A DNA stretch of 58,073 nt from Gracilinanus agilis. Its lineage: Eukaryota. A program made the translations under genes and the position numbers. Under the pieces are notes generated by a model. That model ran no database searches. It worked only from the letters and a program-made list of their open reading frames with translations, and was not told the DNA's origin. Location of the stretch: contig NC_058132.1 of the NCBI RefSeq assembly GCF_016433145.1, positions 67,564,828-67,622,900 of the forward strand, in the 5' to 3' direction. This document shows, piece after piece, positions 1,866 to 55,669 of the stretch. The first letter of the stretch is position 1. The number at the start of each line of letters is the position of its first letter.

Positions 1866-2689
1866 TAATAATTTTTCTTCTCTCAGAGCTTTGCTTCTAT
1901 TTGTCTTCACAAATACCCCTCCCCATATTTATAATGTTCTCTTTCTATGTAGAGTGGCAGGGTAGTAATGCTGAAGATATATAAAACTTGGCTCTGAGAT
2001 ATTAGTCCTGGATTAAAACCAAATACGATGTGTTAAACAACACATGGTGAAAGCATGGACCATATTATTATGATGCCAGACAGAGCTGAATTAGAACCTT
2101 GGGAGGGGGTGTGGATACACATGTACGATGATGCTTTTAACACAACTGTGAAGCAAAATATTTTGTCACACTCCTCTGTGTTGACAGATTTGGGTCTACC
2201 ATCTGCTCTTATACCACATTGTCTGGCTCAGAGCAGCAGTGACAGTCACCCAAGAGTAGCAGGGACTTGTAAGAACTCGGCAATCTCTCACTGAGTGGCA
2301 TGGTAGATTCGTGTCTTTCTGAGCAATCATTTGTTGATTGATTTCTTTGATGGGGAAAGACAATGACAAGAATATCTTTCATTTGCCTCTGAATGCTATA
2401 TGCATGTAGTACTGATGCTCTCAATGTTGTAAGTAACAGCTTACACTTACATAATATTCTGCAGCTACTGAGACCTATAAAACCATTATTTCATTTGACC
2501 CTCCTAAAATCCCACCTCGTACTTTCATGAGTGAGGAAGCAGAGACTTCGAGTGGTTAAGTGGCTTGCCAGTAGTCAGGCAGCTATTAAGTAGTAGAGAA
2601 AACTTAAACCCCCAGGACCTGTGGCTGTTTCTGTTATGCCATTGAGTATTTTTATAAAATTATTCTTTTATTCTAAATAATAGAGCTGG

Positions 2690-2920
2690 CATTTAGGGAG
2701 TTCTTTAAGATTTATAATGTTCATTACATATATTATTTCATTTCTTCTTCATAATCTATGAAGTAGTAGTTCAGGTATTAACTCCATTTTATAGATGAAG
2801 AAACTGAGGCTTAGAGAGTTTAAATAATTTGCCCAATGACACCAAATAGTAAATGATAAAGATAGGGTTCACATATGACCCTTATAATTACTAAATCCAT
2901 TGCTTTTTCCACTATATCAC
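2690..2920 (-). mobile_element. MIR/CORE-SINE
   Basis: ccattttatagatgaagaaactgaggc...tttgcccaa is the antisense CORE motif. Confidence 0.7.
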
Positions 2921-3009
2921 TGAGGAACTTTATTAGTTTCTCCTCTTTGTCTATTTTAACTTATATTAATATTAGAAGGTATAAAGTTATCTAGTTTAGC
3001 TGAAAGCAA

Positions 3010-3140
3010 CTAGGGAATGTGATAGATAGAGTGCCAGGCCCGGAGTCAAGAAGACTCATCTCTCTGAGTTCAAATCTGGCCCTAGATCCTTACTAGCTAT
3101 GTGACCCTGAGCAAGTCACTTAACTCCTTTTGCCTCCCCA
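3010..3140 (+). mobile_element. Marsupial CORE-SINE (MAR1/WSINE-like) 5' part
   Basis: tRNA-like head with gagttcaaatc B box, then tactagctatgtgaccctgagcaagtcacttaa. Confidence 0.65.
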
Positions 3141-4955: not shown

Positions 4956-5506
4956 TCCTAGAGGGCCTCATTGACCAGGCTGTGTGATCCTGTTTGTATT
5001 TCCTCCCACCCTTCTTTAAGCAATAGGGAAGATTTCTGGGAAAGGAAATGATATGGCTAATTTTTGGCGGTTCAATGAACAAAAGTTTAGAAAGGGGGAA
5101 AACTGGGAGCAAGAAGATAATCTTTAAAACATCGTGAAGCTATCATAATAGATAAGGCAAAGAGTTATAAGGACCTGAGTCAGGGGTGGCAATGTGAAAG
5201 TTACATAGCAGAGATATGGGGAGGTTGAATCAATAGCCAGTCAACTAGAAGTTAATAAGGTCCTATGTTCCAGGCAGGATTTGGCAATCGATTAGATGTG
5301 AGGTAAGGGAGAAAGAGGAGTCAATGATAGGGTAGGAAGAAAAGCCACATTTCAAATGGAAAGATGAGTTAAGTTTTTGGACAAATATACCATAACATAG
5401 CCTGAATAAGTATGGCTATGAAGATCATGGTTCCATTGTCCAGTGATTTTTGAAATGGTGCATCATGACTCTTGCCTTCCCTTTACTTCTCCTCTTCTCT
5501 GTCCAG

Positions 5507-5718
5507 CTGGAGCAGTAGAGACACCAGACCGGAGCCCTCGGCCTACCTCAGCACCAGCCATTGCTCAGAGCCATGGTCCAGAAGTCAGCTTCCCTGGGAC
5601 CTCTAATGGCAAGAAACCTTCAGTTTCTAAAGTGCAGAAGGAAACTGTGAAGGTAGAGATAAAGAAGGAAGAAGTGGAACCTGAACAAGTAGAACCAGAG
5701 CCAACTGAAGAATGGAAG
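5507..5718 (+). CDS. EPB41: Protein 4.1R exon 13 (U2/16-kDa region), 212 nt, phase 1 to 0
   Basis: Pyrimidine tract then ccag|CT acceptor; AAG|gtataa donor. Encodes AGAVETPDRSPRPTSAPAIAQ...KETVKVEIKKEE...EPEPTEEWK, matching the recalled 4.1R DRSPRPTSAPAI and EPEPTEAWK motifs. Confidence 0.95.
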
Positions 5719-7574
5719 GTATAAATGTTAAATCAGTTTGGCATTTCCCCAGAATGCCTTCTCCCTGGGCTTGTTTTAATTGACTGATGATGTTAGGGCA
5801 CTTACTTTGTTTTTCTTTTTGATTCAGTGGATGTAATGAGGAGAAATTCAACTCAGAATTTTAGAGCTGGAAGCAGTATTATAGACCATCTAGTCCAGTG
5901 CATCTTAAGCTTCTTTGTGCTCTTTTGTCAATCTGAAGTCTGAGGACCCATTTTCAGAATCATGTTTTCTAAGATAAAGTAAAAATTTATTTCCTTTAGA
6001 AAGGAAATCAATCAAGCTAAAATATGATTATCAAAATACTTTTTTTAAAGAGCACCCTGAACTAGTCCAACTCCTTAATTTTACATAAAATTCCATCATT
6101 TTACATAGCTATTGTGTAATAGCTTTATTGAATCAAAACTGAGGCCAAAGGAGATGAAGTAATTTGTCCATAGTCACATGGCACATAAAAGGCAGAGCTG
6201 GGACTAAAACCCAGGTTTCCTGACTCCTGGCCTAGAATACTTTCTCCTTGTACTTCCATCTGTCATTAGACCCTTCTCATTTTTTTCTTCTTTTCTTCTG
6301 ACATAATTGTGACATCAAGGGAAAGGATTCCTTAAAAATTTTATTTATATCTTTTGCTTTAACAAATCTTAGATTTCCTGCTGTATCCCCTACCTTCTCA
6401 CCTAGAGACATTCCTTTCAAAATCAAATTTTTAAAGAAAAGAAATAAAAATAGGGAGAAAATAATTCAGCAAAATCAATCAGTACATCAAAAAACATCTT
6501 ATATGCACTATTTCATATATGTGGACCTCTGCATCTTTGCCACCATCATCTATATAATAGGAAAGGGGGGAAAATGTCATAAGGGTCCTTTTTTAAGGCT
6601 TGAAAATACCTGTATGGGTGAAGATAGCATAGTTGTTCCAGATTAAGATTTATTTTTCCACTTGATGCAAAAAGCCAGCATATAAAGCTTCAAATTTATA
6701 AAAGTAAATGATTATTTGATTTACAAAAAGATTCATGATATACAACTTTCCAGTGGACATTCTTTGAGTAGTAAAGTTTAGACTATTTTAAAGTAATCCA
6801 GTTTACATACAGCTTTTCCAGAGCATGTTTACTTCATAAATCAAGGTCTACTTTTATGTTGAGTTTTTAAGATTTGCCTTACCAGTGAGGAGAAGCTGCT
6901 CTTGAATTTGTTCATGGCTTTGAATTGATTGTCTTCAGTCATCTAGGGTATCAGGAAGGAATTGGGGTAACCTTGTACATGTTGACAGGACTGTTTAATA
7001 TGTATAAGCAATGCTGGGCCTGAGGTGTTCATTTTACTTTATGGAGGAGGTACAAATCCCAATATTAATAACATGAAGTATGAGAGGAGAATGTGTTGAT
7101 CTTTTTAAGAAGATATTTTAAATTTTATCAACTAGCTAAGAAATCTAATATCCATTAGACTCCCTCAGGAAGTTTTACCACCATGGCAATTTAATTAACC
7201 TTGTCCTTTTAGTGCTAATTCATCATCCAGTGGGCTGATCAGACTGTCTTGCTTTAGACTCATAGTATCACAGAATTTTAGACCTGAAAATGAACCTTGG
7301 AGTTTATGTAGTGTAACCCCTTCATTTTAGAAGTCAGCAAAATGAGGTCCAAATAAGGGAGATAACTTGGCTAGGTCATGTGGCTGATAGGTTGCATGTC
7401 AGACACAGGTGTCTTGACTCTAAGGCTATTGTGCTTTATGCTGTATCACATGATATCAAAAGATATAATTGCAAGGAATTTTTGGCCTGTTTTTTGTACT
7501 TTGAGTTTAATTTGAGTCCAAAGAGAGAGAATGTACTGGCCATGCAAGCTTGTTGTGCCTACCTAGTTCAGTTC

Positions 7575-10876: not shown

Positions 10877-11016
10877 NNNNNNNNNNNNNNNNNNNNNNNN
10901 NNNNNNNNNNNNNNNNNNNNNNNNNNNNNNNNNNNNNNNNNNNNNNNNNNNNNNNNNNNNNNNNNNNNNNNNNNNNNNNNNNNNNNNNNNNNNNNNNNNN
11001 NNNNNNNNNNNNNNNN
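10877..11016. other. 140-N assembly gap, probably hiding EPB41 exon 16
   Basis: The N run directly follows the pyrimidine tract ttttttccccctttcattttcac and precedes three TGCATG motifs. No KKRERLDGENIYIRH-type coding sequence was seen elsewhere between exons 15 and 17. Confidence 0.85.
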
Positions 11017-16747: not shown

Positions 16748-16924
16748 GATTTAGACAAGACCCAGGAAGAGATCAGGAAGCACCATGCCAGCATTAGTGA
16801 GCTCAAGAAGAGTTTCATGGAGTCTGTCCCAGAGCCTCGGCCTAGCGAATGGGACAAGCGCCTATCAACTCACTCCCCCTTCCGGACGCTAAACCTCAAT
16901 GGGCAGATCCCCTCTGGAGAAGGA
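16748..16924 (+). CDS. EPB41: Protein 4.1R exon 17 (SAB domain core), 177 nt
   Basis: tag|GAT acceptor, GGA|gtgagt donor. Encodes DLDKTQEEIRKHHASISELKKSFMESVPEPRPSEWDKRLSTHSPFRTLNLNGQIPSGEG. Confidence 0.97.
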
Positions 16925-19140: not shown

Positions 19141-19191
19141 GTGAAGAAAGCCTCTGTCCTTCCTTCGGAGAAAAAGGTTGGTGGGCCTGAG
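19141..19191 (+). CDS. EPB41: Protein 4.1R alternative exon 17A, 51 nt
   Basis: cag|GTG acceptor, GAG|gtaaag donor. Encodes VKKASVLPSEKKVGGPE (human recalled as VKKTSVLPSERKVGGPE). Confidence 0.9.
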
Positions 19192-19405: not shown

Positions 19406-19431
19406 TGCATGGCTAGTTGGAAAGCTGCATG
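19406..19431 (+). promoter_or_regulatory. Pair of UGCAUG RBFOX motifs downstream of exon 17A
   Basis: TGCATG at 19406-19411 and 19426-19431, about 215-240 nt after the donor. Confidence 0.5.
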
Positions 19432-20545
19432 AGGATGTTACTGTGTATTCGGAGAGAAGAAACCGAATTTAATTGTACCCTATTCTTTTTATGTTGTCTT
19501 TCTCTCCTTTTTGGTTTTCTTTTCTTTTAAAATTCACATTAATTTTGCATCCTTTCTTTCTTTTTCTTTTTTCTTCCCATTTTTGCTGATCAGTCCCCCA
19601 GCTACTTTCTCCCTGATACACATCACTTAGGGGTGTGCAAAGAACCAGTGTCAAACTTCCAAAGTGACCAGAGGAGGCTGGCTCAACTAAGAGAACTGAG
19701 AGCCAAATTTTTCCTCTCCTAGATAACACCTGGCTTCTCCCCAGATGGCAATGAACAGAGATGGAGAACATATTTCTCAGCTGGATAACCAGTTTCCATT
19801 GAAACATTTACATAATGTAGCACATAGCCCTTCACATTGTTAGTGTTTGATTTATAAAAAGTCATGCTTACAAAATCAGTTTCTAAAATGAAAAAAGACA
19901 CATGAAAAGAGAAAAGTTACTATCAAAGAGCTTCCAATCTGAAAATTAGTTTTCCTCTTTGCGTGTGTTATGAATTGCAATGATTTGAATATTTTTTGTG
20001 TACTGCCCACAGATAAATTTGAGTGCATGAGACAAAGTTTTATATTTTTTTCATTTTGCAGAAACTTCAAAATTTATAAGATTAATATGTTTGCTTCTTG
20101 GAGCAAAAATAATTAATATAGTGAATGAAGTTACAGTTTTTTAGGCTTGACCTGTACATTCTTGGGTCCAAGACAACCTTTTTTATCCTATTGTTTATAT
20201 TTAAGACACAAATAACTTGACGGTGAGAAAAATGCTTCTTGCTGGTTTTGCTTACTCTGTCTAAAAAGGAATCAGCACTGCTCATGTAACAGAAATGACT
20301 CAAACTCTTGGGTGGATTTCCTGAAAGGACTGCTTTGCCGCTCCCACAGAGCCCTCAAGAATGATCATTGAGTACTGCCTTCACGAGTGGTTTCATTAGG
20401 GTCAGTTCCTGGATTGGCGGAGAGATTCCAAAATATCTGCCCAAGTTAATACTTTGCACATCCCCAAGTACCATTTTTGAGCATTTTTCATCTGTCATTG
20501 TGTTCATCTTTCTCTGTCTTTCTTGATCTTCTACCACGAAAGCAG

Positions 20546-20797
20546 ACACAGGAACGTGCTCTGTTAGTACAGGATGAAGACAAAATAAAAAGGCAAAAGA
20601 CATCCACTGAGAGAGCCTTGCCCCAGCAAGAAAATGAAGAAACTCTTCCCAAGGTTTCCATTCCAATCCCTGAGGAACACAAGTCCCTCAAAAAGTGCCA
20701 CCTCTACTCTAGTACTTTTCCATCTCCTCGTATTCCTTTCATGATGTCCTTTCTCGTGGTTCTTGCATTGGCTGTTTGGTGGTTGGTCTTTCTGTGA
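20546..20797 (+). CDS. EPB41: Candidate alternative terminal exon with a C-terminal hydrophobic (tail-anchor-like) segment, 83 aa plus stop
   Basis: About 45-nt pyrimidine tract followed by in-frame acceptors AAG|CAG|ACACAG|. The phase-0 frame is open to TGA at 20795-20797 and ends in IPFMMSFLVVLALAVWWLVFL. No transcript evidence is available. Confidence 0.45.
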   Translation, partial: TQERALLVQDEDKIKRQKTSTERALPQQENEETLPKVSIPIPEEHKSLKKCHLYSSTFPSPRIPFMMSFLVVLALAVWWLVFL

Positions 20798-21410
20798 CCT
20801 GAAAACAGGGTGCTCACCTGAAACCTCAAGACCACAACCTTGAACTCTTGTCCTTGGTTGGCTTCTGTCTACTGCATTTTCTCCTGTACTATGCTCTCCT
20901 AATCTCAGGAGCTCACTGTCACAGGGGCTTTCGCCACTGTTCTGTTTATAAACCGTGTTCCCCTTTGTACAGTATATATCTTGGGGTGCAAAGGAGTGGC
21001 AATGGATTGCCAGGTCAGTTTTTCTGCATCAAAGTTAAACAAGCCTTTGTAATCCATAAAAAAATCAGATAAAAAGCATATGGCAGGTTGGTACTTTTTC
21101 CAAGAGCTATAACTCTTAAGCCTGCATGTTTCTCCTGATTACTGTTGCTGTGTTGTCCCCCCTCTAAGATTTCATATGAAGCAAAGTAAGTACTCTAAAG
21201 AAACATTTGATGGGATTCTCCCTTGTTCCTCAACAGTTATTCATGTGACATGAACTTCATGGTTTAAGGAGGAAAAAAATCTGACTTTGTATTTATTCAA
21301 AAGCCTTAAGAATATACATAATGAGCAATGAAGTCTGATCCATAACCACTCCTTTTCTGGGGGGGAAATCAAACAAACCAGTACACAATAGCCTTTTTGT
21401 AAAATATAAA

Positions 21411-21552
21411 AATAAAAAGGCTTTTGACAGCTGTGGCCTTCTTTTGAATATTTCAGAGATGGTCAGGGACAGATTACTTCTGCTGCCTAGCATACTGAAG
21501 AGATCTGAGCTATCTCTTAATAAACAGGGTGTTAATGGTTTAAAAAAATAAA
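21411..21552 (+). terminator. Candidate polyadenylation signals for the putative terminal exon
   Basis: AATAAA at 21411-21416 and 21547-21552. Both sit in A-rich tracts, so they could be chance. Confidence 0.3.
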
Positions 21553-22426
21553 AAGAAACTGCCACTGCCCTTTAAATTGTAGCCAGGGCTCTTTTCCCCA
21601 GAGTCCTCTTCTTCTATCCTATATAAAACAGTATAGTACGGCTACTGTGAGACCCTGCGTAGTTAAATTCTGTTCGTAAGTGTTAATGAGGGTGTTTCAC
21701 TTTTCTGAATGAATATACTTTTGAACTTCTCTTTATGATTTAAGAAATAACGATGTTACCAGAAGCAATACTTACCCATGACAATTAGCTTAAAAATCTA
21801 TATTTATGAATTTTGTTTTCTTTATTTCAAATGTGTTCTTGAAAAGTTGTGCTTAAAACCACAATGTGTTTTTAATGATGGTAATATGAGGGAAGTATTA
21901 TTGTGATGAGTTTTTGTCTTGTGCTTGCATGTTGATTTATGAGGCTTCTCTGAATGTAAATATGAGTGCCATCTATGTTCAGATCATAATTCTGGTGGTG
22001 CTTCACCAGTTATTTTGACTTTAGAACTAATTCAACTTTGCATGCTGCTTGCTTTTGAGGGACACCAGATGTACCTGTCTGGATGAATTGGTTCAAGTAG
22101 TTTCATACATTGATTTTCAAGTTTGAGTTCATATGTAAAGTCATACATAGAGATTTAAAGCTATTTTTTGTCTTTGGGACACTTGCTGCTTAAAACAAAA
22201 AAAGAAGTAAGTTGGAACCCAGAACCTTCTTCCTAATATTATAGTGTTATCTGTATTATACTGTTGTCTCTTGAGGTATATAGAAGTGATTCTAGAGTAT
22301 TTCCTGAAAACTGCCACTTTTTCAATTTAGGCATTCCCACTAAACTTGTAGAGAAGAAAAAGCTTGACTAGTAGAAGCTGGTATCAGAGAATAGACCTGT
22401 GTATGTCATTGGATATGTCTATTTAT

Positions 22427-40390: not shown

Positions 40391-40849
40391 ACTAAGGATG
40401 ACATTCCCAAAGAGGAAGTGGATTCAATGACAAAGAGACCAAACCCTGACTCTGAATGGGAGGGCCTTAAGCATTCAGTGGTCCTTAGTGGGACCCAAAT
40501 GACAACTCGATCGGAGTCTCCACAAAGCCATGACTTTGGGCCTGTCTCCATAAATGGCAAGGAGGCAGAAGACAAGGCACATGAGGCAGCTGGTCTCCTT
40601 GGTAACAAGGAGATGCTAAGTTGGCCAAATGGGGTATGTACAGGTGTAGAAGAGCAAACCAGTGCCTTAAAGCACTTGGAGTGCATGCTATCTGAAACAC
40701 CTGCTTCCTGTCAGCTGTACACTGGTGGAAAAGAGGCAAAGGGTGGTGAAGACCATGTTACACCAAATGAGCTACTTGGGAAGCAGAATGGACCATATCC
40801 TGACTTTCGTGTGGGTTCAGGGTTCCCCATCCTCATTCGAAGTTTCCAG
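40391..40849 (+). CDS. EPB41: Protein 4.1R large alternative exon (17B-like), 459 nt, 153 aa, phase 0 to 0
   Basis: ttgtag|ACT acceptor, CAG|gtagta donor. Open frame TKDDIPKEEVDSMTKRPNPDSEW...YPDFRVGSGFPILIRSFQ. Position and size match the roughly 450-nt epithelial exon 17B; I cannot verify the peptide from memory. Confidence 0.82.
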
Positions 40850-41242
40850 GTAGTAATGGTTTGGGTCAAATGCCTCTCTTTGGGAGAGGGCCAGAACTCT
40901 CCCTGGGATGGTGATGGGAGCCATTTATTTCATACTTTTCTGATTAAAGAATGATTAAAGAACTTGTGAAGGCATCTCAGAGGAACTTACCCAGAGGAAT
41001 TCCAAAGCAAGAATTGACTTTTTTGCCAGCTAATTTGCAAGGCATATGTAAATAAACCCTGTCATGGCCATTACACAGTCTGATAAGGGTTTTTTAAAAG
41101 GGGATGCTACCTTTCTTAGTTCAAATGCAGGTTTAAAAAGAAAGGTAAAATTCTGAAACTTCTATGGGCAAGAAACTTCAATGTTTTTGATAACTACAGT
41201 TGCTCAGGAAACAAAACCAGCTCTGTTGAAAAAGAGTAGTTG

Positions 41243-42262: not shown

Positions 42263-42391
42263 CCTCCTCTTGTGAAGACTCAGACAGTCACCATCTCGGA
42301 TGTTGCTAATGCTGGGAAAAGTGAAATCCCAACCAAAGATGTCCCTATTGTTCACACTGAAACTAAAACCATCACTTATGAGGCTGCCCAG
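42263..42391 (+). CDS. EPB41: Protein 4.1R exon 18 (CTD), 129 nt
   Basis: tag|CCT acceptor, CAG|gtagga donor. Encodes PPLVKTQTVTISDVANAGKSEIPTKDVPIVHTETKTITYEAAQ. Confidence 0.97.
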
Positions 42392-43579
42392 GTAGGATAT
42401 ATATTTTTTTAACTTAAATCTTTGGTTGCTTATAGTCAAGTTCTTCTTCAGACTTGGTAGTTCTAGCAAGTGGCATTTATTTACTGTTTTCATAGATTCA
42501 GAAGAGGAAAATTGCCTTCAGTGGGGTTAATGAGCTGATAGGAATAGTGGCCAAGGGTAATTATAGTAAATTGTGAAAAGCTTTGAAGATTAGACAGAAA
42601 AGTTTGGATTAGGAATCACTTAAGAGTGCCAGTGGAGTGTGAAGATAAAATCAATGTTTGAGGGAAGGAATGGAGGCAGAGAAATAAGTGAAGGTGGTCC
42701 GGGTATCAAAAGGTGAGGATTACTTAGATTTAAGTGATGGTTTTCAAAGTAGGAAGGAAGAAGTGAGTCTACAATAAACTGGGGGAGGTGGGGGAAGACT
42801 GAAAGGACTTATCAGTGAATCAGATGTGGAAAATGCCAAAGGACAGGATCTGACCATGAGTTCAAGATTTTAAAACTCTGTGTTTGTGGAAAAACGCCAT
42901 TGGGAAATTAGGAAAGGTTCACTTCCCTTGTACCCCATATCCAATTAATTGTCAAGTCTTAGCAGTTTGACCTCCAAAAGTGATCTCCTACCCCTCTCTT
43001 TGGCCACCATTCACCATTCCTTAAATGGAATATGGCTCAGTCTCCCAAGTAGTCCCGTAGAGCTTCCAGGCCCTTTCCAATATGTCTACCATACAGCTAC
43101 CAAAATAATCTTCTGACCATATCATTTCCCTCCTCAAGTGCCTTTAGTGGTTCTCTACTGCCACTGCTTCTAGGAAAAAATACTAATGCCTTCGCTTGGC
43201 TTTTTTGTAAAGCCTTCACAAATTGACTCCAATCTACCTTTCCAGGTTTCTTACTGAAGTGATAGTTTTAGAAGTAGGAAGAATTGAGTCCACAACAAAC
43301 TGGAAAAAAAAAGACTGATAGGACTTATTAAAGTATTAGATATGGAAAAAGGTTGGGAACTTAGATAACTAAAAGGATTGTGGTGTCATCAACAGAAAAA
43401 TAAAAATTTGGAGAGAGTAGATGGGAGGAGAGATTAAGTTTCATAAGTAAAATATGTTTTGTTTGAGGAAAATATTAGGGAACTCTTTGGCAAGTGACCA
43501 CTATATCCCTCTGTGACTGGATTAGATCAGGAGTCCCAAACCAGTGGACTGGGTTGCAGAAAGGTTTGTAACTTTGGAT

Positions 43580-44400
43580 ATATGCTCTATCCTGCCTCTT
43601 CTTTAACCTCATATCCAATCAGTTGCCAAGTTTTTATTGTTTCTGTCTCCCCAGTATCTCTTACATCCATTCCCTTCTTGTTTAGGCCCTAATCACATCT
43701 TCTCTAGACTTATTGCAACTGCCCCTCCCTGCTTCAGGCCTCTTCTCTCTCTGGGCCATTGTACTTCCAGCTGCCAGTGTTTCCCTACAGTGCAAGTTTG
43801 ATCGTGTCACTCCTGTGGGTTGGAATCCCACCTCAGACACTTGCCAGCTTTTTCACCCCAAACAAGTCAATTAATCCCATCAGCCTCCTCCAAATCATCA
43901 TCCCTAAAATGAAGAAGAGATTGGACTCCAAGCCTCTTCTGACAATAGAACTATCATAAGATAAACTAGTTTGCCACTTAAAATACTCCACAACCTGGTC
44001 CCAACTCTCCTTTCTAGTCCTGTTCTTCATACATCACATTCCATCTCCCAACTCTGTACCTATTCGTAGACTGAGGTGCCTACCCTGCAAAAGGCACATT
44101 CTTTACCTCTGTCACTGAGAATCCCTAGTGTCTTTTAGTGCTCAGCTCTAATGTCTCCTCCCCCAAAATTACATTATATTTGTTTGTGTAAATGAGATCA
44201 TCATTTTATATCTATATAGCCATTGCCCAGGGCCTGGTACACAGTAAGTGCTAAATAAATGTTAGCTAGTATTATGTGCGGACTTATCATGTCATCCAGT
44301 ACAATGTGAGTTCCCACATGCAGGGACTATTTCATTTTTTTTCTTTAACTTGACACATGAATTCATAATAAATGCTTGCCTCTTGATTCATTGCTCTCCA
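43580..44400 (+). mobile_element. L2 LINE 3' fragments
   Basis: ctctagacttattgcaac...; ends cctggtacacagtaagtgctaaataaatg and aataaatgcttg. Confidence 0.7.
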
Positions 44401-44669
44401 AGGTCAGTCTTACGCTGGTTGCCACCATCACCCTTACCATTATTCTTTTGGCTTACTTGATGCTGTCTACCAGAATTTTCATTGCAGAGGGAGGAACAGT
44501 CAGCAACAGCATTCCCTTCCCTGTTCAGGAATATCACTTGTTAGCCTTTCTACATGAAAAGAGTGGAAGCACTCCATTCAGATACACCCCCAGGAGAGAG
44601 AGACTGAACCACTGGCAGTGCCAAAATTGACTGCACAGAGTTTCAAAGTTGGAAGGGATTTTATTTTAT

Positions 44670-44868
44670 TTTTTAATCCTTACCTTCCATCTTAGAATCA
44701 ATATGGTATATTAATTCCAAGGCAGAAGAGTGGTAAGGGCTAGGCAATGAAGATTAAGTGACTTGAGCAGGATCACATAGCTAAGAAGTATCTAAGGCCA
44801 GGTTTGAACCCAGGACCCTCCCATCTTTAGGCCTAGCTCTCAATCCACTGAGCCATCCAACTGTCTCA
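44670..44868 (-). mobile_element. SINE1 (opossum-type) copy
   Basis: Antisense ccttaccttccatcttagaatc...ccactgagccatcca. Confidence 0.85.
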
Positions 44869-45230
44869 TGGAAGAGACTTCAGTGGCCATCCATTCTTTA
44901 CCCGAAGTCCTTCATTTGGGGGAGGGGAGGCAGGAAGCCATCATCTCCCAGGGTGCTTTTACTTTTGTATAGCTGCAAGAGTTAGGAAGGTTTTCTTGAT
45001 TTTGAAGCCCGAATTTGACTCTTTGAGACCTATTGCTTCTAATCCTACTCCACAAAGTTAGACACAGTAAGTTTAAGTCTTCTTCTGTTTGACAGCCCTT
45101 CACATACTTACCTATCAAGTCTTAACCTTTTTTTTCTATGGTGTTCTCTCTTTTCTCTCTCTCTCTGTATCTCTCTCTCTTTCCTCCTCAATTTTAGCAC
45201 ATTTAGGTGGTCTCTCTATATTTTTTTTAA

Positions 45231-45421
45231 TTTTTTTTTTAATTTTAAACCCTTAACTTCTGTGTATTGACTTATAGGTGGAAGAGTGGTAAGGGTAGGC
45301 AATGGGGGTCAAGTGACTTGCCCAGGGTCACACAGCTGGGAAATGTCTGAGGCCAGATTTGAACCTAGGACCTCCCGTCTCTAGGCCTGACTCTCAATCC
45401 ACTGAGCTACCCAGCTGCCTC
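45231..45421 (-). mobile_element. Young SINE1 (opossum-type)
   Basis: Full-length antisense copy; flanked on both sides by tctctctat, a T-run and aa (TSD-like). Confidence 0.92.
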
Positions 45422-45643
45422 TCTCTCTATTTTTTTTTAAACCACAACAGTTTGAGAAGCTGTGAGTTAGAAATTAATTAATCCCATTTCCCTCTGCTCT
45501 GATTATTGGGCTATCAGGGATCATGAATTTGCCGATGTTTCCAAACTCCAAGACTTGTATGCATTCGACAGTCACTTTTCTAATTTATTCCTCCCCTCAT
45601 CTTCCAGGCTATTTTGTAATCAGTCAGCAAATTAGTTAGCACT

Positions 45644-45646
<3 letters not shown>

Positions 45647-45674
<28 letters not shown>
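45647..45674. repeat. (CA)n microsatellite within an L2 relic
   Basis: Seen directly. Confidence 0.9.
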
Positions 45675-45678
<4 letters not shown>

Positions 45679-46389
45679 CCTGCCATCAAGGAACTTACAT
45701 TCCAATGAGGGAGACAACATAAAAGATAGCTATAGATGAAAGATAGCTTTCTAGTTATTTGCTTTTTGTCATCATAAAAAGGTTAACTCTCCATAGAAAA
45801 GATGCCTCCTTAACCCTTATTTTCTAAGTGAATTGGTTGAATTTCCCTTGTTAGAAAATCTGTGAACAAAGAAAGATATAAGTAAATGTAATATATATAG
45901 TGCATAAAGTACATATATATATACACTTTAATATATATAAAGTAAAAAGCATACTTTTTAAATATATAAAGAGATATGCTATAAGATGTGGATTTCTTCT
46001 GCACTATGCCTATACTTCATGATATATTTCTTCTCTGTTTTGAGCTAAAGACCCATAGCCATGAAATCAGACCATGGGATCCCAGTGTTGTTGGCCTTGC
46101 TATCAGCCACGGTCCTGTCCCAGCCTCACCTCTAAGGATCTACATCATAGATTATCATTGCTCTCTTAGCCACCAGTGCCCCTCTCCAGCACTGTGAGAA
46201 TCTAATCTTCCCTACTTAGGCTGACTTTGTGAAAAGGACTATTTATTAGTCAAAGCATTACTGTGTAGGATGTTGGTTATTATTTTAAAATGCGTGACTG
46301 AGCCAAGAACTGGCAGGTGCCATATCCTCTTAGTCTTGTCCTCTTATTCAAGGAGATACTTAATTGGTGGTGTGTGACTCTCTCTTCAG

Positions 46390-46491
46390 ACTGATGAGGG
46401 CAATGGTGACCTAGACCCTGGAGTCCTACTGACAGCTCAGACCATCACATCTGAGACCACAAGCAGTACTACCACAACTCAGATTACCAAG
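46390..46491 (+). CDS. EPB41: Protein 4.1R exon 19 (CTD), 102 nt
   Basis: cag|ACT acceptor, AAG|gtaaag donor. Encodes TDEGNGDLDPGVLLTAQTITSETTSSTTTTQITK. Confidence 0.97.
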
Positions 46492-46929
46492 GTAAAGTAC
46501 TAATACACAAAGGGTGGCTGGTTACCTGTTGGACTGCTGAGTCAGCTGCTTTCTCACCCCCCCCCCAAAAAAAAAAATCTTGGCCCTGGCAAGGGGGTAA
46601 AGTCCTACCTTGTTTCCTTGTTTGAATTACTCCCAAAATTTCTGCTTCCTAGCTAGAAGTTGAATACTGATTTCTCCAAAAGCAGACCAAATGCCCAAGA
46701 AGAAGGCAGTGGACACGGAGAGATCTCTTTCTGAGAGATTCAAGGAAACAATATAATGTAAAAATTTTGTGTGTTACTTTTGTAATTATAAAAACCTGTG
46801 TTCAGTCCCAGCTACTAAGCTTACTTTAAAAATCCCTTTTGTTGGCCTAAGTTTCCTCAGCTATAAAATGGGGATAATCTTTGCACTACTTATCTTTAAT
46901 ACTTTGTCAGCCAGAAAACACTATCAATC

Positions 46930-47137
46930 GGGGGGCAGCTGGGTAGCTCAGTGGAGTGAGAGTCAGGCCTAGAGACAGGAGGTCCTAGGTTCAAACCCGG
47001 CCTCAGCCACTTCCCAGCTGTGTGACCCTGGGCAAGTCACTTGACCCCCATTGCCCACCCTTACCAATCTTCCACCTATGAGACAATACACCGAAGTACA
47101 AGGGTTAAAAAAAAAACCAACAAAAAACCAAAAAAAC
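46930..47137 (+). mobile_element. Young SINE1 (opossum-type) with 15-bp TSD
   Basis: TSD aaaacactatcaatc at 46915-46929 and 47138-47152; A-rich tail. Confidence 0.93.
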
Positions 47138-47302
47138 AAAACACTATCAATCAGTCAAATACTTACTAATTGTTATAGTGCCTGGTACTGGAGATACAAG
47201 TTCCAAAAAATGAAATAATTCCTACTCAAAATGAGCCTATATTTAAATGGAAAGGAGACAAATATATAGAAAAATAAATATAAAGCTAATTATGTATATA
47301 CA

Positions 47303-48745
47303 CACAGTGCTGGAAGAACTATGGGAAAAGGTTTGCAATATTATACAGGAGGCAGCAACAAAAAAAAGTCCCAAAGAAAAAGCAGAGCAAGAAAGCAAAA
47401 TGGCTGTGTGATGAGGCTTTACAGATAGCTGAGGAAAGAGGGAAAGAAAAAAGAAAAGGAGAAAGATCTCCAGACTCGGTGTAGAATTCCACAGAACAGC
47501 AAGGAGAGATAAGAAGGTTTTCTTAAATAAGCAATGCAAAGAATAGAAGAAAGCAATAGAATGGGAAAGACAGATCCCTTCAAGAAAATTAGAGACCTTA
47601 GGGGAAACTTTCAAACAAAAAAATGGGTGTGATAAAAGACAAAAATGGTAAAGACTTGACAGAAATAGGAGAAATTAAGAATAGATGGCAGAACAAATTC
47701 AGAAGAACCATACAAAAAAGATCTCAGCATCTGCAGGATTACCCAAGATGGACATGTCATAGTAGAGAGTTCCAACAGACTAAAGCCTGTGTGTGTGTGT
47801 GGATCACAACAAAATGGCAAGTCCTCAAAGAGATAAGTGCCAGGGCATCTAATTTTTCTCCTGAGGAAACTGTATGTGGGTCAAGAAGCAACAGTTAAAC
47901 ATGGCACAATTGATTGGCTTGAGATTAGGACAGGAGTATGACAAGGCTACATAGTATCACCTTATTTATTTAACCTATGGACAGAGTACATCATGTGAAA
48001 TGCTAGGCTAGATGAATCAAAAGCCAGAATTGAGGCTGCCCAGAGAAATATCAGCAATCTCAGACAATATCACCAATGGCAAGAAAGTGAAAAAAAATTA
48101 AGAAGCCTCTTAATAAGGTTGAAATAAGAGCGTAAAAGCTGGCTTGAAGCCTAACATTAAAAAAACTAAGATCTTGGCAAGATCCCATCACTTCCTGGCA
48201 AATAGAGGGAGAAGAAATGGAAGCAGTGTCAGATTTTATATTCTTGGGCTCAAAGATCACTGCAGATAGTGACTGCAGCCACAAGAGGAAAGCTGTGGTA
48301 AATCTGGACTGCATACTAAAAAGCAGAGAAATCACCTTGCTCTATATAATCAAAGCTATGGTTTTTCTAGTAGCTACATATGGCTGTGAGAGTTGGACTA
48401 TAAGGAAAGTTGAGTGTTGAAGAATTGATGCTTTTGAATTGTGATATTGGAGCAGACTTTTGAGAGTCCCTTGGATGGCAAGGAAATCAAATCAGTCAGA
48501 ACTGAAATTTATTCAGATTATTCACTGGAAGTTCATACTTTGGCCACATAATAAGAAGACAGGATTCACTAGAAAGACCCTGTTGTTGGAAAAGATTGTA
48601 GATAAAAGGAGAAGGGATAAGAAAAAGAAACAATGAACATGAACTTGGAAGGACTTTGGGAAATAGTTGAGGATAGAAGGGCCTATCGTGCTGTGGCCCA
48701 TGGGACCATGAATTTGGACACAGCAATGACTGAATAATAATAGCA
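47303..48745 (+). mobile_element. BovB-like RTE LINE, 5'-truncated and internally deleted
   Basis: Long stretches resemble the recalled BovB consensus: aagaaaattagaga, tcaagaagcaacagtta, ggctccaaaatcactgcagat-like, agaattgatgcttttgaa, and a 3' gactgaa end. Confidence 0.88.
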
Positions 48746-50653
48746 AGGTGAATGGGTATTGACAACTTCTGCAGTCTCTATCCTGGGCAAGGCAGTCCTG
48801 GGCCTGCCCTCATACAGCTACCAACTTAGTTCAGACCCTCAATACTTTTTGCCTGAATTGTTTTTAACAGCTTTCTGAGCAGTTTTTCTGCTTCAAGTCT
48901 CTCTCTTCCCCATTCCAGTCATTCCAGTCCCCATGCCAAGAATAGGCATCTATTTGGTGTGTGTCAGGCTTCAAGATACACATTTGCTAAAGTAGGAATG
49001 CCCAATCCTGTGCTCTCATTAGAACGTAGGGTTGCTTAGGCAGTGGGGCAGTGCTCCAGATTGACTCTGCTGTTGTGCTTTCTTCTGGAAGAGGCCTCAG
49101 AAGAGTCTCATTGTAACAATCCATCCCAGGTAGTCCTGACCCTACTCTTACTCTTCTCCACCTTCTCCTACCCCAATAAAGCTCCATTGTCCCTGAGAAT
49201 GGGGTCCACAGAGCCAGCCTCTTTTGTGTGGGCTTCTCTCAAAAAAGGTCCAGGATTTCAAGTCAGATTGATCCATAGACAAGGAGAGCTTGGAACAACC
49301 ATGACTGGGTCAGAGAAGAGATAGACCATTGCTACGGTGGATAGGGCAGGGAGGAGACAGAACTGCCCAACTATTCCTTCATTTTTCTTTTCTCTCCAGT
49401 GAGAAGGAGCTTTTGGGCTGGGGAAAAAACCCCAAAGATTATTAGGGAGAACTATATTTTGGACTCTGAGAAAACTAGTAGATGTGATACTGAGTAGCTT
49501 CTCAGTGACCTCATCATTTAAACCTGAACCTTTCAGAAAAACACTTGGAATGACAGATACTATGTGCCAAATACTGGGCAAAAGGAAGCAGAGCCGCCAT
49601 GGCTCTGTTCCCCATCAAGATGACTTCTCAAACCAAAAACCCCTCTGGGGCCCCTACTCTATTCTGTGTAGTTGTATCTCCTTAAGGTCAAGAACTGCCT
49701 TGCCTTTATTTGTATCCTCCTTACTGAGAATCATCCTTCTGGCATTTGGACGTGTGCTTAGTGAATGCTTTTTCATGAATGCTTTTATTCAGTATTCAGC
49801 TATCTGGTTAGAGCTCCAACTCCATCCCTTCCCAGACTGCTGGGTTTAGCTGCTTAAGGACTCTGAATTTCAATTTCCTCGTCTGTAAAGTGAGAATGAT
49901 TCTACTTGTCTATGGCGGAATTGTGATAATCTTGCATTGTTTGCCTGACAGGTTGAAGTGAATAAATTGCTTTGTACTATATAAATATCAGCTATTGTTT
50001 TCTTTTCACATTGCCCCTTTAAAATTCAATCCAAAATATTTTAGGCAGCTCAGTACCCAGTGAATAGTGTTGGGCTTGGATTCAGGAAAAAGACCTGAGT
50101 TCAAATTCTGTTTCAGATACTAGCTGTGTGACTTCATCTCCATCTGCCTTAATTTACATATCTATAGAATGGGGATAATGAAAATCCCTACTTTCAGGTA
50201 TTTCTGTGAGGGTGAAATAAGACAATAGATGTAAAGAAGCACTTTGCCAACCTTAAAGCACTATAGATTATCCTGATTCAGGGACCAGCTCTTCATCAGC
50301 TATATAACATGCTGCCTATCCACCTCCTTCATTTTATAGGAAAGGCAGATGAGCCCCAGGGATGGGAAGTTTGGGACTGGACCCCAAGAATCCTGACTTT
50401 AAGTCCCTCCTCTTACCTCTTCTGTGGTAGCTTTTCTTAATCACTGAAACTGAGAAAACAATATGAATAGAGAAAGGAAAAGGATTTTTGTATTGAAGAC
50501 TTTAGGGATCCAAGGATCTACACTTATAATCTTGGAGAAAGGGATAAAAATACAGATTCAATTGCTAAGCAGCAGCAGACTTAAAGTTTCCCTTTTTTTT
50601 TTTTTTTTTTTGGTCTTGATGGTCCCTAATAACCATTTTTCCTTTGATTTCAG

Positions 50654-50734
50654 ACTGTAAAAGGTGGGATCTCAGAAACTCGGATTGAAAAAAGAATTGT
50701 AATCACAGGAGATGCCGACATTGATCATGATCAG
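50654..50734 (+). CDS. EPB41: Protein 4.1R exon 20 (CTD), 81 nt
   Basis: cag|ACT acceptor, CAG|gtagga donor. Encodes [27 protein letters not shown]. Confidence 0.97.
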
Positions 50735-51539
50735 GTAGGAGAGGTAAAGAACCAGTGAGGAGAGAAGCCCCTAATTAGGAATCAATCAAGTAGTAAGCAT
50801 CTATTAAGTACCTACCATATGCCAGGCATTCTGCTAAACCCTGTGGAAACCAAAAGAGGGAACAGACAGCGCCCTCCCCACCCCTCTTCCCCCAAAGAGC
50901 TTACAATCTAATGGAAATATCCCAACCAAGGCTATGGGTATTTCAGGATACCAGAGCAAAATGTGTAGGTGAGGAGCTTCTTTTCTAACTCACTCTAACT
51001 TTGGGACAGTTACTATGTGTCACTGGTTCTCATTTTCCCCCTTTTTAAATAAAGGACCTTCCAACTCTATCTAGCATTGTGTGATAAATATGTGATTTTC
51101 CTGCTTTGGGCAACTAGAGACTAAAAGGTCAGGAGTATTATTCCTGTTTATCAGCTAAGCCAAGTCAGTGCTGTACAGCCTAGAAAGGTGGAGAAGCTAT
51201 TTTTGCCTCAGGCATCATCAGCAGGATTGCCAAATTTCTAATTCCATATCCTTTCTTTCTTAGGGATGCTGTTATTCAGAAAGTCTTTTAAAATTAAAAC
51301 AAAACAAAATCTGAACTGCTAGGCTGGAAGCAGGTTTGAGATACAGAGGGCCCAGAAACCAGGGTGGTAGACCAAGGGAAAGGATTTTGCTTCTTGCCCC
51401 CAAGGAATCTGTTGAGCTATCTCACCATTCTTCCTCTTTCAGTCACTGGGAAGCAGCAGTCAAGCCGTAGTAAAACAAAACATTTCTGACAGGAGATAAT
51501 ATAGCTTGGTTACTCAGTCCCACCTCTAGGGAGAAGGGG

Positions 51540-51835
51540 AGACTATTTCACTTATGAACCTCTCTGAGTGTTAGGAAGTTTTTCTTTTATATCTACCCCA
51601 AATCAGGTTCCCTGTAACTTCTGCCTGTTAGCCCTAATTCTACCCTCTAGGGGTGAGCAAAACAAATCTAGCCTCCCCTTTGTATAGTAGTTCTAAGATA
51701 TTTGAAGATAGCTGCCTTTCTTTCTGATGCCACTAAATCTTTTCTGCTCCTTGTCTAATAGCTCCATTTACCCCAGTTAGTCTACAGATAGTGTGGTTTT
51801 GAGTACTCTCAGCATCCTGGTTGTCCTACTCTTTA

Positions 51836-51896
<61 letters not shown>

Positions 51897-52200
51897 TTCA
51901 GTTGTTTCTGACTTTCTGTGATCCCATTTGGGCTTTTCTTGGCAAAGATACCAGTTTGTGGTTTGCCATTTCCTTCTCTGGTTCATTTGACAGATGAGGA
52001 AACTGAGGCATACAGGGTGAAATGACTTGCCCAGGGTCACCCAGCTAGTAAGTTTCTGAGGCCAGATTTAAACTCAGGAAGAAGCCCAGCTTTCTATGGA
52101 CCATGGAACCACCTAGCTGCCCTACTCTTAATTCATGCCAGCTCTCATATATTGCCTAAAATGTGGTGCGTCAAACTAGACACTGTATCCTACTGTATCT
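51540..52200 (-). mobile_element. L3/CR1 fragment interrupted by a MAR1 SINE
   Basis: gaagtttttcttttatatctacc...; resumes after the SINE with tggtgcgtcaaactagacactgtatcc. Confidence 0.6.
51837..52122 (-). mobile_element. MAR1-type SINE with expanded (CAA/CAG)n tail
   Basis: Antisense MAR1 body. Tail (TTG)n(CTGTTG)n at 51837-51898. TSD-like cctactct(t)taatt on both sides. Confidence 0.85.
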
Positions 52201-52229
52201 ACTGTGTATCCAATCTTGTGCTAAATGCC

Positions 52230-54445
52230 ACAAGAGACCTAATTCCTCTAAATTCTAGTTCCTTTCCTCTATTGATTATTTCCCATTTATCTTGTATATA
52301 TTGTATATATTGTAGGTACACAGTTGTTTGCATGTTGTCTCCTCATTAGATTATGAGCTGCTTAAGGGCAGAGACTGTCTTCTGCCTCTCTTTGTATCTC
52401 CAGTACTTAGCACAGAGCCTGACACATAGTAGGTGCTTGATAAATGTTTACTGACTCACCAAGAAGAAGCATATAATATGGTCCCTGATCTCAAGCTGCT
52501 GAATTTAGTTAGGGAGACATCAGCTCTCTTCTGAACTCCAGTCCCCTACCTTACAAAATTCTAACTGGATGTCTGCCTTGATCAATGTCTTTAAATTCAG
52601 CATAAACAAAATGGAACATGTGTTTTCCTGCAAATTGCCACTTCTGCAAAACTTTCTTATTTCTGTTGAGAGACTCCTTCCATCCTCCCAGGCACCAAGC
52701 TCAATACCCTGGGAGTTAATGACTCTCCTCCCCCAACCCTTCCATTAATTGAGTTGACCCCCCATTCTATTCTCAAGGCTACAACCTTCATTACCTCATC
52801 TTTAGAGTTCCTTTATTAGCTCCTTCTTCCAGTCTCTTCTTCCTCTCTAATCTATCCTCCTCATAGCCCACCTGACAGATCTGACCCTATGACTCCTCTG
52901 TCCACAGACCTTGTTTGATTTCCTGTTGTTTACAGGATAAACATCATCTTCCCAGCCTGGCATCGAAAGCCCTCTACACTTGGTTTTCCCCTTACATGTT
53001 AGCCTTTCCAGGCTTTTTACACTTTTCTCAGCTACGCTGGCCTTTGTGTCATTCCTCTCACCCAGTACTCCGTCTATGCCTTTGCATTGCCTGTCCTCCA
53101 TGTCCAGAATGCTCTATCCCCTCACCTCTACTTCTTGATTTCCTTGACTTCCTTCAAGCCTCAGCTCAAATCCCACTCTCTGCAGGATGCCCGTCCTGGT
53201 CTTCCTCACTGCTGGGGCCTTTCCCTCTGAGATTACCTCTGAATCCCCTGTAGAGATCTTGTATGTACCTAGTAACTTACACGTTGCCCCCCATTAGATG
53301 TCGATCTCCTTAAGGGCAGAGCCTGTTTTTGTCTTCTTTGTATCCCAGGTGCTCAGCCCAGTGCCTGTCAAATAGCAGGCACCTAATAACATGCTTATTG
53401 GCTGAGTTCTTCACTCTCCACCTCAGCCTCTCAGAATCCCTCTTTTCCTTCATGGCCCAGTTCATAGGCCATGAAGTCAGTCTTTCTGTTGCTCCAGTTG
53501 GGAATGTTCTCTGCTTCCATCATATTAACTTGTACTTGTCCATGTCAGTGGACATGTATTCCCTAGTAGAGTATAAGCACCTTGAGGGCTGAGACTGTAT
53601 TCTGTATTTGTGCCCTTAATCTCTGAGCTTGACCCCTTAGTCAGCCTGCCTCTATCTCTCTTTCTCCCTTAATCTCTCTTTCCCTAATGGCTTCTTCCCT
53701 GCTGCCTATGTGTATGTCTGGGTCTATCTCCACCACATTTCTTACATTCATCCCATTTATATGACTATGATATGAGTTGGGCCCTCATCACTTCTAACCC
53801 AAATGATTATAATAGCATGCTTCCAGTCTGTTTCTAACTCTTTCCCTCCTTCCCTTCTTGCTTTCTTCTCTAGGCCTTCTTTCACATGGCTACTAAAGTA
53901 ATCTTTTTAAAGCCCAGTCCAACCATGTCATTCCTCTCCTCAAAAATCTTCAGTGGCTCTTTATTACCTTGAGGATCAGACACAAAACCTCTCAGCCTGG
54001 CTCCTACAGTTTGACTCCAACTTCTCTTGGTAGCTTTAGTTGGTTTTACTCCTTGTACTCTACATTCTTGCCAAAATGGACCACTGAGTGTTTTCTTTGC
54101 TTGGTGTTTTGTTTTTGCCCTCCATTTCTCTCTGTAGGCTGTCTTCATTCCTGGAATAGACTTTCTTCTCATTCTTAGGATCCCTAGCTTCTTTTAAAGC
54201 TTAGCTTAGGTGCTGCCCCCTACACAAAGCCTCCCTGTTCCCCCAGTCCCTTCAGCTGCTAGTTCTCTCTCCTTTCTCAGATGAGCTTTTAGTTGCTTAT
54301 CCAGGTACATGTTCTATCCCCCCAGAAGAATGCAGATTCCTTGAGAATAAGGACTCTTTTTTTTCCCCTTTTTTGCCTCGGTGTCCCCAGTGTCTAATCC
54401 AGCATATAGTAGACGATTGTCAAATGTTGCCTGAATTGAATGATG
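52230..54445 (+). mobile_element. Cluster of L2 3' fragments
   Basis: Repeated L2 ends (gcctgacacatagtaggtgcttgataaatg; gtgcctgtcaaatagcaggcacctaataac) and L2 body motifs. Confidence 0.7.
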
Positions 54446-55570
54446 CATTTAGGATGCAGATAAGTGCTAGCTTGTGATATCCAAACTGAACTCTTCTTGG
54501 CCTTAAAGAGAATTACCTCCCTGAGGGGAAGAGTGGTCAAAAAAAGGGTTAGGATTTATGAAGCTAATGCTTGAGCTGGGCTCTAAAATTCTAGAGAGTC
54601 TGTATTGGAGAAAGGCTGGGAGAGTAGCAGGATGAGTTGGCCAGAGGTGCAACAGGAACAAGACTGCTGGGCCCATGATTGAGCTTTGGGCAATAGGTTT
54701 TCATCTAGTGCCATCTCTCATCTCTGTATCCCTTCTCATTTTCTATTTGACCTTCTTGTTTTCTATCACTCAAGAATGCAGTGATGTACATATGAAAAAT
54801 TTTACAATAATCAAAGGAAAGTGCAGGGGTGAAGGGAAGCAACAGGGTTCCCCTCATAATTAGTGAAAGTTCACTGTGTCAGCTTTCTGTTTTCTCCTGT
54901 AGCTTCTTATAGCTTTTCTGATCAGATTTTTACTCCATCTTCATATGGTCAGGTCTTTCCCATTAGGTTTCCTCCTTCCCATGCTTCCCTTCTTAGTCTC
55001 CTCATTCGACTCCTGTACCAGAATACCTCTGCGTCGTCATTTTTTTTTTCCATTCTGCTGCCCCACATGTATGAAAATCATAAGAATCTTGTGAAAAAGG
55101 ATTTCACAGGTCATTTGATCCAGTTCACACCTGAGTAGGAGTCACCTATGCATTATTCCCTGTAAGTTATCATCCATCTTCTTAAAAGCTCTCCGGGGAT
55201 GGGAAATTCACCTACTCCCTCCTCCAGCCTCTTCTCTTTTTGAGCTGTTAATGCAGCTCAAATGCAGCCCTCTTCCCTTTAGTCTTACATGTTCTGTCAA
55301 TCCTCTCAGAAGCACCTAGTGAGGAAGGGTTCCCTCTCCCTTCCCTCCCCACTCCTAAAAGCAATCTTATCTTCCTACTTGTTACAGTTATCTAGCCTGG
55401 AACTTGACTTTCATCTCCTCTGACCTAATCAGATTAGATTAGTATACTTGCTGCCCTGGACTTATTAGGCCTTCAGGGAAGAAGGGATTGCCTTTACCAT
55501 AAAGATGCTTCTTCCCTTGTAAATTGGTCCAGCTGCTTTCCTTTTTAATTACTTCAACTCTCTCTCTTAG

Positions 55571-55669
55571 GTCCTCGTTCAGGCAATCAAAGAAGCTAAG
55601 GAGCAGCACCCTGACATGTCAGTGACCAAGGTCGTGGTCCATCAGGAGACAGAGATTGCCGAGGAGTAA
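55571..55669 (+). CDS. EPB41: Protein 4.1R exon 21 coding part with stop (exon ends at 55674)
   Basis: tag|GTC acceptor. Encodes VLVQAIKEAKEQHPDMSVTKVVVHQETEIAEE*. Donor CAG|gtaaga lies 5 nt after TAA. Confidence 0.97.
   Translation, partial: VLVQAIKEAKEQHPDMSVTKVVVHQETEIAEE

Follow-up and report, generated by a model that had tools for sequence, protein, structure and literature searches.

The EPB41 locus

The window, by which we mean the whole stretch of 58,073 nucleotides of opossum (Gracilinanus agilis) DNA that was analyzed, carries EPB41, the gene for protein 4.1R, on its forward strand. The identity of the gene was confirmed by the CTD exons 18 to 21 at 42263-55666 (Table 1). Exon 17 has 91.5% identity with the spectrin-actin binding (SAB) part of protein P0046, and its homologues have a Pfam SAB match. 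The same 17-residue exon 17A is present in all related loci, in the frog gene model P0014 and in the gecko models P0038 and P0039. The tail exon that is the subject of this report lies on the coding strand in the 25-kb intron between exons 17 and 18, downstream of exon 17A. Its reading frame is open from 20477 to the stop codon. The ends of exons 17 and 17A are in phase 0 and carry GT donors, which allows either exon to join the tail frame directly.

Table 1. Coordinates of EPB41 features in the window
Feature	Position	Strand	Remarks
EPB41 exon 13-like sequence	about 5500-5720	+	
EPB41 exon 17, second half of the SAB domain	16748-16924	+	Phase 0 at both ends; GTGAGT donor
EPB41 exon 17A	19141-19191	+	51 nt, 17 codons; phase 0; GTAAAG donor
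Proximal alternative C-terminal segment	19594-19722	+	42 codons (SPSYFLP...KFFLS), then TAG
Conserved intronic block upstream of the tail acceptor	20447-20545	+	CTTTGCACAT, YCAY cluster, pyrimidine tract, AAG-CAG
Tail exon, coding part	20546-20797	+	83 codons, then TGA; start at 20543 adds one Gln
Charged linker and juxtamembrane motif (KVSIPIPEE..KSLKKC.LYS..SPR)	20546-20731	+	From translation, alignment and codon models
Hydrophobic C-terminal segment, predicted transmembrane tail anchor	20732-20794	+	21 residues; nothing after it
Stop codon of the tail exon	20795-20797	+	TGA; same codon in every homologue
Marsupial-conserved sequence past the tail stop	20798-22160	+	blastn blocks 20427-21507 and 21700-22133
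CTD exons	42263-42391, about 46381-46437, 50651-50737, 55571-55666	+	Last ends HQETEIAEE

The 25-kb intron contains 24 stop-to-stop frames of at least 84 codons, and the tail frame is thus unremarkable when judged from the window alone. A strongly hydrophobic end is found in only one of the 84 intron frames of at least 60 residues, that of the tail, and the tail region is single-copy within the window. That the frame is more than a product of chance rests on comparison across species and not on the window. Elsewhere, a run of 140 Ns occupies 10877-11016, and the longest open frame of the intron (178 codons, 40418-40954, + strand) is found some 1.3 kb 5′ of exon 18. EPB41 has a 450-nt epithelial exon 17B in this interval, to which the frame may correspond.

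The final 21 residues encoded by the tail exon are all apolar, with a Kyte-Doolittle mean of 2.58 over the last 19. The criterion for a tail anchor, a single hydrophobic segment of about 20 residues in the last 30 to 50 or so with few residues or none following, is fulfilled, the segment standing at the extreme C terminus. No family was found for the tail in Pfam, and the ESM Atlas returned only noise at 0.65; the proximal ending described below likewise has no family.

Homologues in tetrapods

A word-indexed search returned six homologous open reading frames (ORFs) with 68 to 88% identity, and phmmer, run exhaustively against 1.84 billion representatives, returned eleven homologues at E<1e-10. 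Further homologues came from an additional search and from scanning JGI metagenome contigs with a DNA pattern, giving an overall identity range of 44 to 93%. The degenerate DNA scan contributed two more bird-like copies, together with two bacterial chance matches. It yielded no placental-like copy from the JGI metagenome contigs, and the searches could not exclude the existence of one. All but one of the 18 tail-carrying loci that were fetched are genomic sequences colinear with the window; the exception, L015, is RNA.

Five lineage groups were inferred from the sequences. Group A (the window, L004 to L009, L017, L018, P0007 to P0010, P0034 and P0035) is marsupial-like and AT-rich, and we take its members to be marsupials; L017 and L004 can be aligned with each other from end to end, and each with the window only in patches. 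Group B (L001, L002, L010, L011, L015, L020 and L021) is bird-like, with a GC content of 45 to 48% and an exon 17 end identical to that of the bird Limosa lapponica (P0041). Group C (L003 and L012) is gecko-like, sharing an unusual exon 17 ending and a near-identical exon 17A with the gecko proteins P0038 and P0039. Group D (L013 and L014) is an unplaced lineage, for which a search for Rfam SINE-type matches gave none that could place it. Group E consists of frogs, represented by the Staurois parvus protein P0014 and locus L016.

Two observations on individual entries may be recorded here. In lineage D (L013, positions 2224 to 3064, and L014), only about 550 bp separate exon 17A from the tail exon, and the proximal SPSYFLP segment was not found on the contig. 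Among the tails, that of lineage D has diverged furthest (44% identity), with frame, stop and hydrophobicity kept and an in-frame ATG at codon 5. The gecko protein P0038 is labeled “UNVERIFIED_CONTAM: Protein 4.1 [Gekko kuhli]” at NCBI. Its exons 17 and 17A are close to those of Sphaerodactylus and to L003 (positions 1464 to 2753), and the contamination flag therefore looks doubtful for EPB41.

Selection on the encoded protein

The reading frame ends at the same codon in 22 of 22 distinct homologues, spanning marsupial-, bird- and gecko-like copies, the unplaced lineage and two frogs, and TGA was seen in the DNA of every locus checked. Database ORFs that run past this point show W as the next residue because a code-4 gene caller reads TGA as W. 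Over 84 codons, there is no indel among nine amniote DNA copies, while both flanks are full of indels. Differences between the window and L003 fall 14, 10 and 33 times at first, second and third codon positions, respectively, an excess at the third position.

Codon models (IQ-TREE GY+F3X4, with omega free or fixed at 1 and compared by a likelihood-ratio test) gave an omega of 0.38 for the whole tail exon, with a loss of 16.9 log-likelihood units when omega was held at 1 (2dlnL 33.8). The constraint is unevenly distributed. Over the first 48 codons, evolution is nearly neutral (omega 0.67; P = 0.08, not significant), whereas omega falls to 0.24 for codons 37 to 63 (P = 1.5e-6), to 0.18 for the 36 codons at the C terminus (P = 6e-10) and to 0.09 for the 21 hydrophobic codons (P = 5e-8). 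Within the tail, substitutions exchange one hydrophobic residue for another, and its hydropathy remains between 2.4 and 2.8 in all 22 homologues. The WW pair is invariant, and little or no change is seen across the same set in an MS pair, a Pro-Arg-type boundary, a Cys and a KVSI.P motif.

Between the opossum and the bird-like copies L001, L002, L010 and L015, nucleotide identity is 82 to 84% over about 385 bp and dS is about 0.5 (20543-20794), which is far below neutral mammal-sauropsid divergence. The tail exon is therefore also constrained at the RNA level, and omega is, if anything, overestimated.

Frame-specific selection, the single stop position in 22 homologues, the conserved acceptor and the frog model joining exon 17A to the tail (both described below) together make it likely that the tail segment is a genuine protein-coding, alternative C-terminal exon older than the amphibian-amniote split. 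Neither UTR function nor chance can explain selection focused on the hydrophobic helix together with a fixed stop, the lack of indels and a conserved acceptor in phase.

A proximal ending within the same terminal exon

The same intron contains a second alternative ending, nearer to exon 17A. This proximal segment sits behind a conserved TTTTGCTGNYCAG acceptor (CAG), and its stop is TAG or TAA across the aligned species. Its omega is 0.18 (P = 1.7e-10), and it forms the C terminus of gecko protein P0039 and of P0040. Alignment of L015, the RNA contig of P0040, to the genomic locus L020 gave exon 16, exon 17 (with 17A skipped) and then one uninterrupted block that extends from the proximal acceptor through the entire tail exon to 40 nt past the tail stop. 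L015 is thus a true spliced sauropsid RNA, and the tail region is present in mature RNA. In that molecule, the tail stretch is 3′ UTR of the proximal form and not its translated end.

Since L015 runs unspliced from the equivalent of 19594 into the tail, the tail exon is part of a longer terminal exon, inside which its acceptor is an alternative 3′ splice site. That longer exon begins at 19594, is at least 1.2 kb long and contains the tail exon. Selection of the same strength as on the last 36 tail codons, combined with documented splicing, makes the proximal segment a positive control for the tail. The proximal ending is seen in the gecko “Protein 4.1” A0ACB8FR90 and in L015. It shares with the tail the intron, the phase, the presence of a stop codon, the loss of the CTD and the strength of selection. 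The two differ in that the proximal ending has 42 residues, no hydrophobic segment and directly documented splicing, which the tail exon lacks.

Three-way identity among marsupial-like loci falls at about 22160. The sequence between the tail stop and this point is likely to be a 3′ UTR common to both C-terminal forms, although the poly(A) site was not located. No canonical poly(A) hexamer is conserved: the opossum AATAAA copies at 21411, 21519 and 21547 are absent from two other marsupial-like loci.

Splice signals upstream of the tail

A pyrimidine tract at 20501-20535 is followed by AGs ending at 20542, 20545 and 20551, all at codon boundaries of one frame. The first two form the tandem acceptor AAG-CAG (20540-20545), and no AG occurs between the pyrimidine tract and 20541. 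The acceptor sequence AAAGCAGA is identical in all amniote copies; the base that follows is usually C and is A in L010. In the frog locus L016, the equivalent sequence is GGGCAG|ACT, and only the CAG is kept. The third AG (exon start 20552) has been lost in L012 and group B and is absent in frogs. The conserved acceptor is thus the CAG, with an exon start at 20546, and 20543 is its NAGNAG partner in amniotes. The preliminary description, made before any comparison, had listed the pyrimidine tract, three AGs in one phase-0 frame, the stop and the 21 apolar residues. All of these held; of its three tandem acceptors, however, only AAG and CAG proved to be conserved, and the one for 20552 did not.

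About 95 nt of intron 5′ of the acceptor is conserved better than the linker codons. Both the CAG acceptor and the CTTTGCACAT element (20452-20461, about 90 nt upstream of the acceptor) are kept from frog to opossum. When the opossum is compared with groups B and C, 20447-20834 forms an island of conservation in otherwise unalignable intron. Strong conservation of the upstream intron is a pattern typical of regulated alternative exons, a reading inferred from sequence alone. A NOVA-type YCAY cluster follows CTTTGCACAT at 20471-20507. On the same kind of inference, CTTTGCACAT and the YCAY cluster might be regulators of the distal acceptor.

Sites of the RBFOX type also occur in the region. Two TGCATG motifs lie 215 to 240 nt downstream of exon 17A (19406-19411 and 19426-19431), a pair conserved in marsupial-like, gecko-like, bird-like and lineage D copies, and two further conserved TGCATG motifs lie 3′ of the tail exon (21926-21931 and 22039-22044).

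Evidence for the junction

The Staurois parvus gene model P0014 (CAI9595004.1; UniRef A0ABN9FDA5) consists of exon 17, exon 17A and the tail. In its sequence ...VCGSE|TQGE..., the bar follows 17 residues that match exon 17A of the opossum in alignment; the junction is therefore equivalent to an exon start at 20546. The model begins only at exon 17, with an odd MRK start, and the evidence on which it is based is unstated.

With the sole exception of this gene model, no RNA or ORF with a junction into 20543 or 20546 was found in the database. Proteins with FERM or SAB spliced to the tail were sought with three queries: the tail alone, a 336-amino-acid carrier with the matching region restricted to the tail, and the frog model. 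A screen of all 97 retrieved proteins for a hydrophobic end yielded only the frog model; isoforms of >588 amino acids were outside the length filters. The absence of a distal junction carries little weight because the database holds a single RNA contig even for the proximal form.

The preliminary description had proposed a terminal exon that, spliced to exon 17 or 17A, would yield FERM, SAB and a membrane anchor without the CTD. It had regarded frameshifts or stops in relatives, loss of the hydrophobic tail in relatives or an absence of junction reads as grounds for rejection. The core of this reading is supported, with membrane insertion inferred only. The terminal exon is real and was incompletely delimited, lying inside the longer exon that starts at 19594. 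The nine amniote DNA copies have no indel, the stop is fixed in the 22 homologues, and selection on the whole exon (omega 0.38) agrees with the proposal; loss of the hydrophobic tail was not seen in any of the 22 homologues. The junction search gave no RNA junction into the tail, the frog gene model alone showing the join of 17A to the tail at 20546.

Proposed mechanism

We propose that splicing from exon 17 or from the 51-nt exon 17A would involve a choice between two acceptors of one composite terminal exon. Choice of the proximal acceptor (19594) would give a soluble ending of 42 residues. Choice of the distal acceptor (CAG at 20545, with AAG at 20542 as NAGNAG partner) would give an ending of 83 residues, comprising a weakly constrained acidic and basic linker, the conserved juxtamembrane motif and a 21-residue hydrophobic helix with which the protein would finish. 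Either choice would remove the CTD (exons 18 to 21). The distal product would therefore be predicted to consist of FERM, SAB and a single C-terminal membrane span, with its functional part wholly cytosolic. Such a tail-anchored 4.1R could provide a direct link between the bilayer and both spectrin-actin and FERM partners.

Insertion would most likely be posttranslational and into the endoplasmic reticulum (ER), which in muscle would be the sarcoplasmic reticulum (SR). The 4.1R tail is assigned by inference to the ER-directed class of tail anchors, as known from GET/TRC40 substrates, because its end is 21 residues long and very hydrophobic, has nothing after it and has no basic residues beyond. 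Exon 17A is a muscle-enriched exon. The suggestion of the SR arises because the frog model includes 17A and is no more than a guess. 4.1R is a cytosolic or peripheral protein, and on this basis we assume that it has no signal peptide or other span, the 5′ exons being outside the window.

The composite explanation, an ancient alternative coding exon selected by acceptor choice and giving a tail-anchored product, is likely. Use of the distal acceptor in the opossum, membrane insertion, the target membrane and the tissue are inferred only, from the sequence.

Alternative explanations

The rival that survives best is translation of the tail frame outside 4.1R, from a transcript that starts in the intron or through an unseen upstream exon, the product being a small tail-anchored protein that lacks both FERM and SAB. 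In its favor, no junction-bearing RNA was seen, the frog model covers exon 17 onward only and has its odd start, and lineage D has the in-frame ATG at codon 5. Against it, the opossum and groups A to C lack an in-frame ATG before the hydrophobic segment, the conserved 5′ signal is an acceptor with a pyrimidine tract and not a start codon, the phase fits exons 17 and 17A, and the frog model joins the tail to SAB exons. We consider this explanation unlikely. Its simplest version, an independent small gene with its own ATG, was rejected, as a conserved start codon was not found.

A second possibility is that the tail ORF is never translated, its sequence being kept for a role as 3′ UTR or regulatory RNA of the proximal isoform and its open frame being incidental. 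L015 does carry the tail unspliced after the proximal stop, and the dS between the opossum and bird-like copies implies some constraint on the RNA. Constraint of that kind, however, lacks the power to give an omega of 0.09 to 0.18 in one frame or the excess of third-position changes. It also fails to account for hydrophobic-for-hydrophobic changes, zero indels in 84 codons and one stop in 22 lineages. This reading is very improbable.

Also very improbable is a poison cassette, in which the stop of an internal exon would trigger nonsense-mediated decay and so tune EPB41, the peptide being irrelevant. Conserved, stop-carrying alternative exons are often regulatory, the flanking intron is strongly conserved, and a GT follows shortly past the stop in some lineages. 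Nevertheless, no donor past the stop is conserved, the gecko-like copies lack the GT, and the RNA contig L015 continues past the stop unspliced. For this purpose, a stop alone would suffice, and neither 36 codons at an omega of 0.18 nor a preserved hydrophobic helix would be needed. A chance ORF or a repeat was rejected outright, the region being single-copy in the window and conserved across tetrapods.

Relation to known proteins

On the preferred reading, an alternative tail-anchored ending of 4.1R, the canonical and tail forms would have in common the gene, the strand, the FERM and SAB exons up to 17 or 17A and the phase-0 structure. In contrast to canonical 4.1R, which is peripheral and ends in the CTD, the tail form would have no CTD and would finish with a membrane span. 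The closest entry is the frog protein A0ABN9FDA5 (“SAB domain-containing protein”), which has 57% identity over the last 55 residues and the same junction and stop. It is an unreviewed, partial model of 153 residues without FERM, has no stated evidence or function and is not named as a membrane protein. The tail sequence is thus already public, in this model and in anonymous ORFs. The full text searched yielded no account of a 4.1R that is transmembrane or tail-anchored, older subscription papers on 17A and 17B being beyond its scope.

Two other systems offer partial parallels. Splicing of C-terminal exons of SLMAP (sarcolemmal membrane-associated protein) supplies a tail anchor and sets membrane targeting in muscle. 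As proposed for 4.1R, alternative C-terminal exons of a cytoskeleton-associated protein bring in an anchor helix. SLMAP is unrelated in sequence, however, and is always anchored, swapping two anchors, whereas the choice in EPB41 would be between anchored and soluble endings. Small ankyrin-1 (sAnk1 or Ank1.5), from ANK1, is an integral membrane isoform of the SR encoded by a red-cell membrane-skeleton gene. It and the tail form of 4.1R would both be integral membrane products of such genes. Unlike the 4.1R tail form, sAnk1 comes from an internal promoter, has an N-terminal anchor and lacks most ankyrin domains, and it has no sequence similarity to the 4.1R tail.

Significance

The tail exon has been under selection for at least about 350 million years, and it therefore very probably does something. 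It is well supported as coding and unproven as part of a membrane protein; full-length RefSeq and Ensembl isoforms were outside the length limits of the searches. As a locus, EPB41 would offer a clean example of one terminal exon that provides two mutually exclusive C termini through acceptor choice.

4.1R is the textbook peripheral linker between spectrin-actin and the membrane, and its splicing has been studied for decades. The CTD is the NuMA- and receptor-binding region. A membrane-embedded 4.1R without the CTD, if real, would be a different kind of linker. It could explain functions of 4.1R at internal membranes, such as calcium handling in heart and muscle. A bolder reading can be entertained only as a possibility: that an integral membrane 4.1R, ancient and overlooked, is produced by an acceptor switch that adds an ER/SR tail anchor, and that the exon is intact and used in placentals, including humans, so that some of what 4.1R does in muscle, heart or neurons would be carried by a form that has not been assayed.
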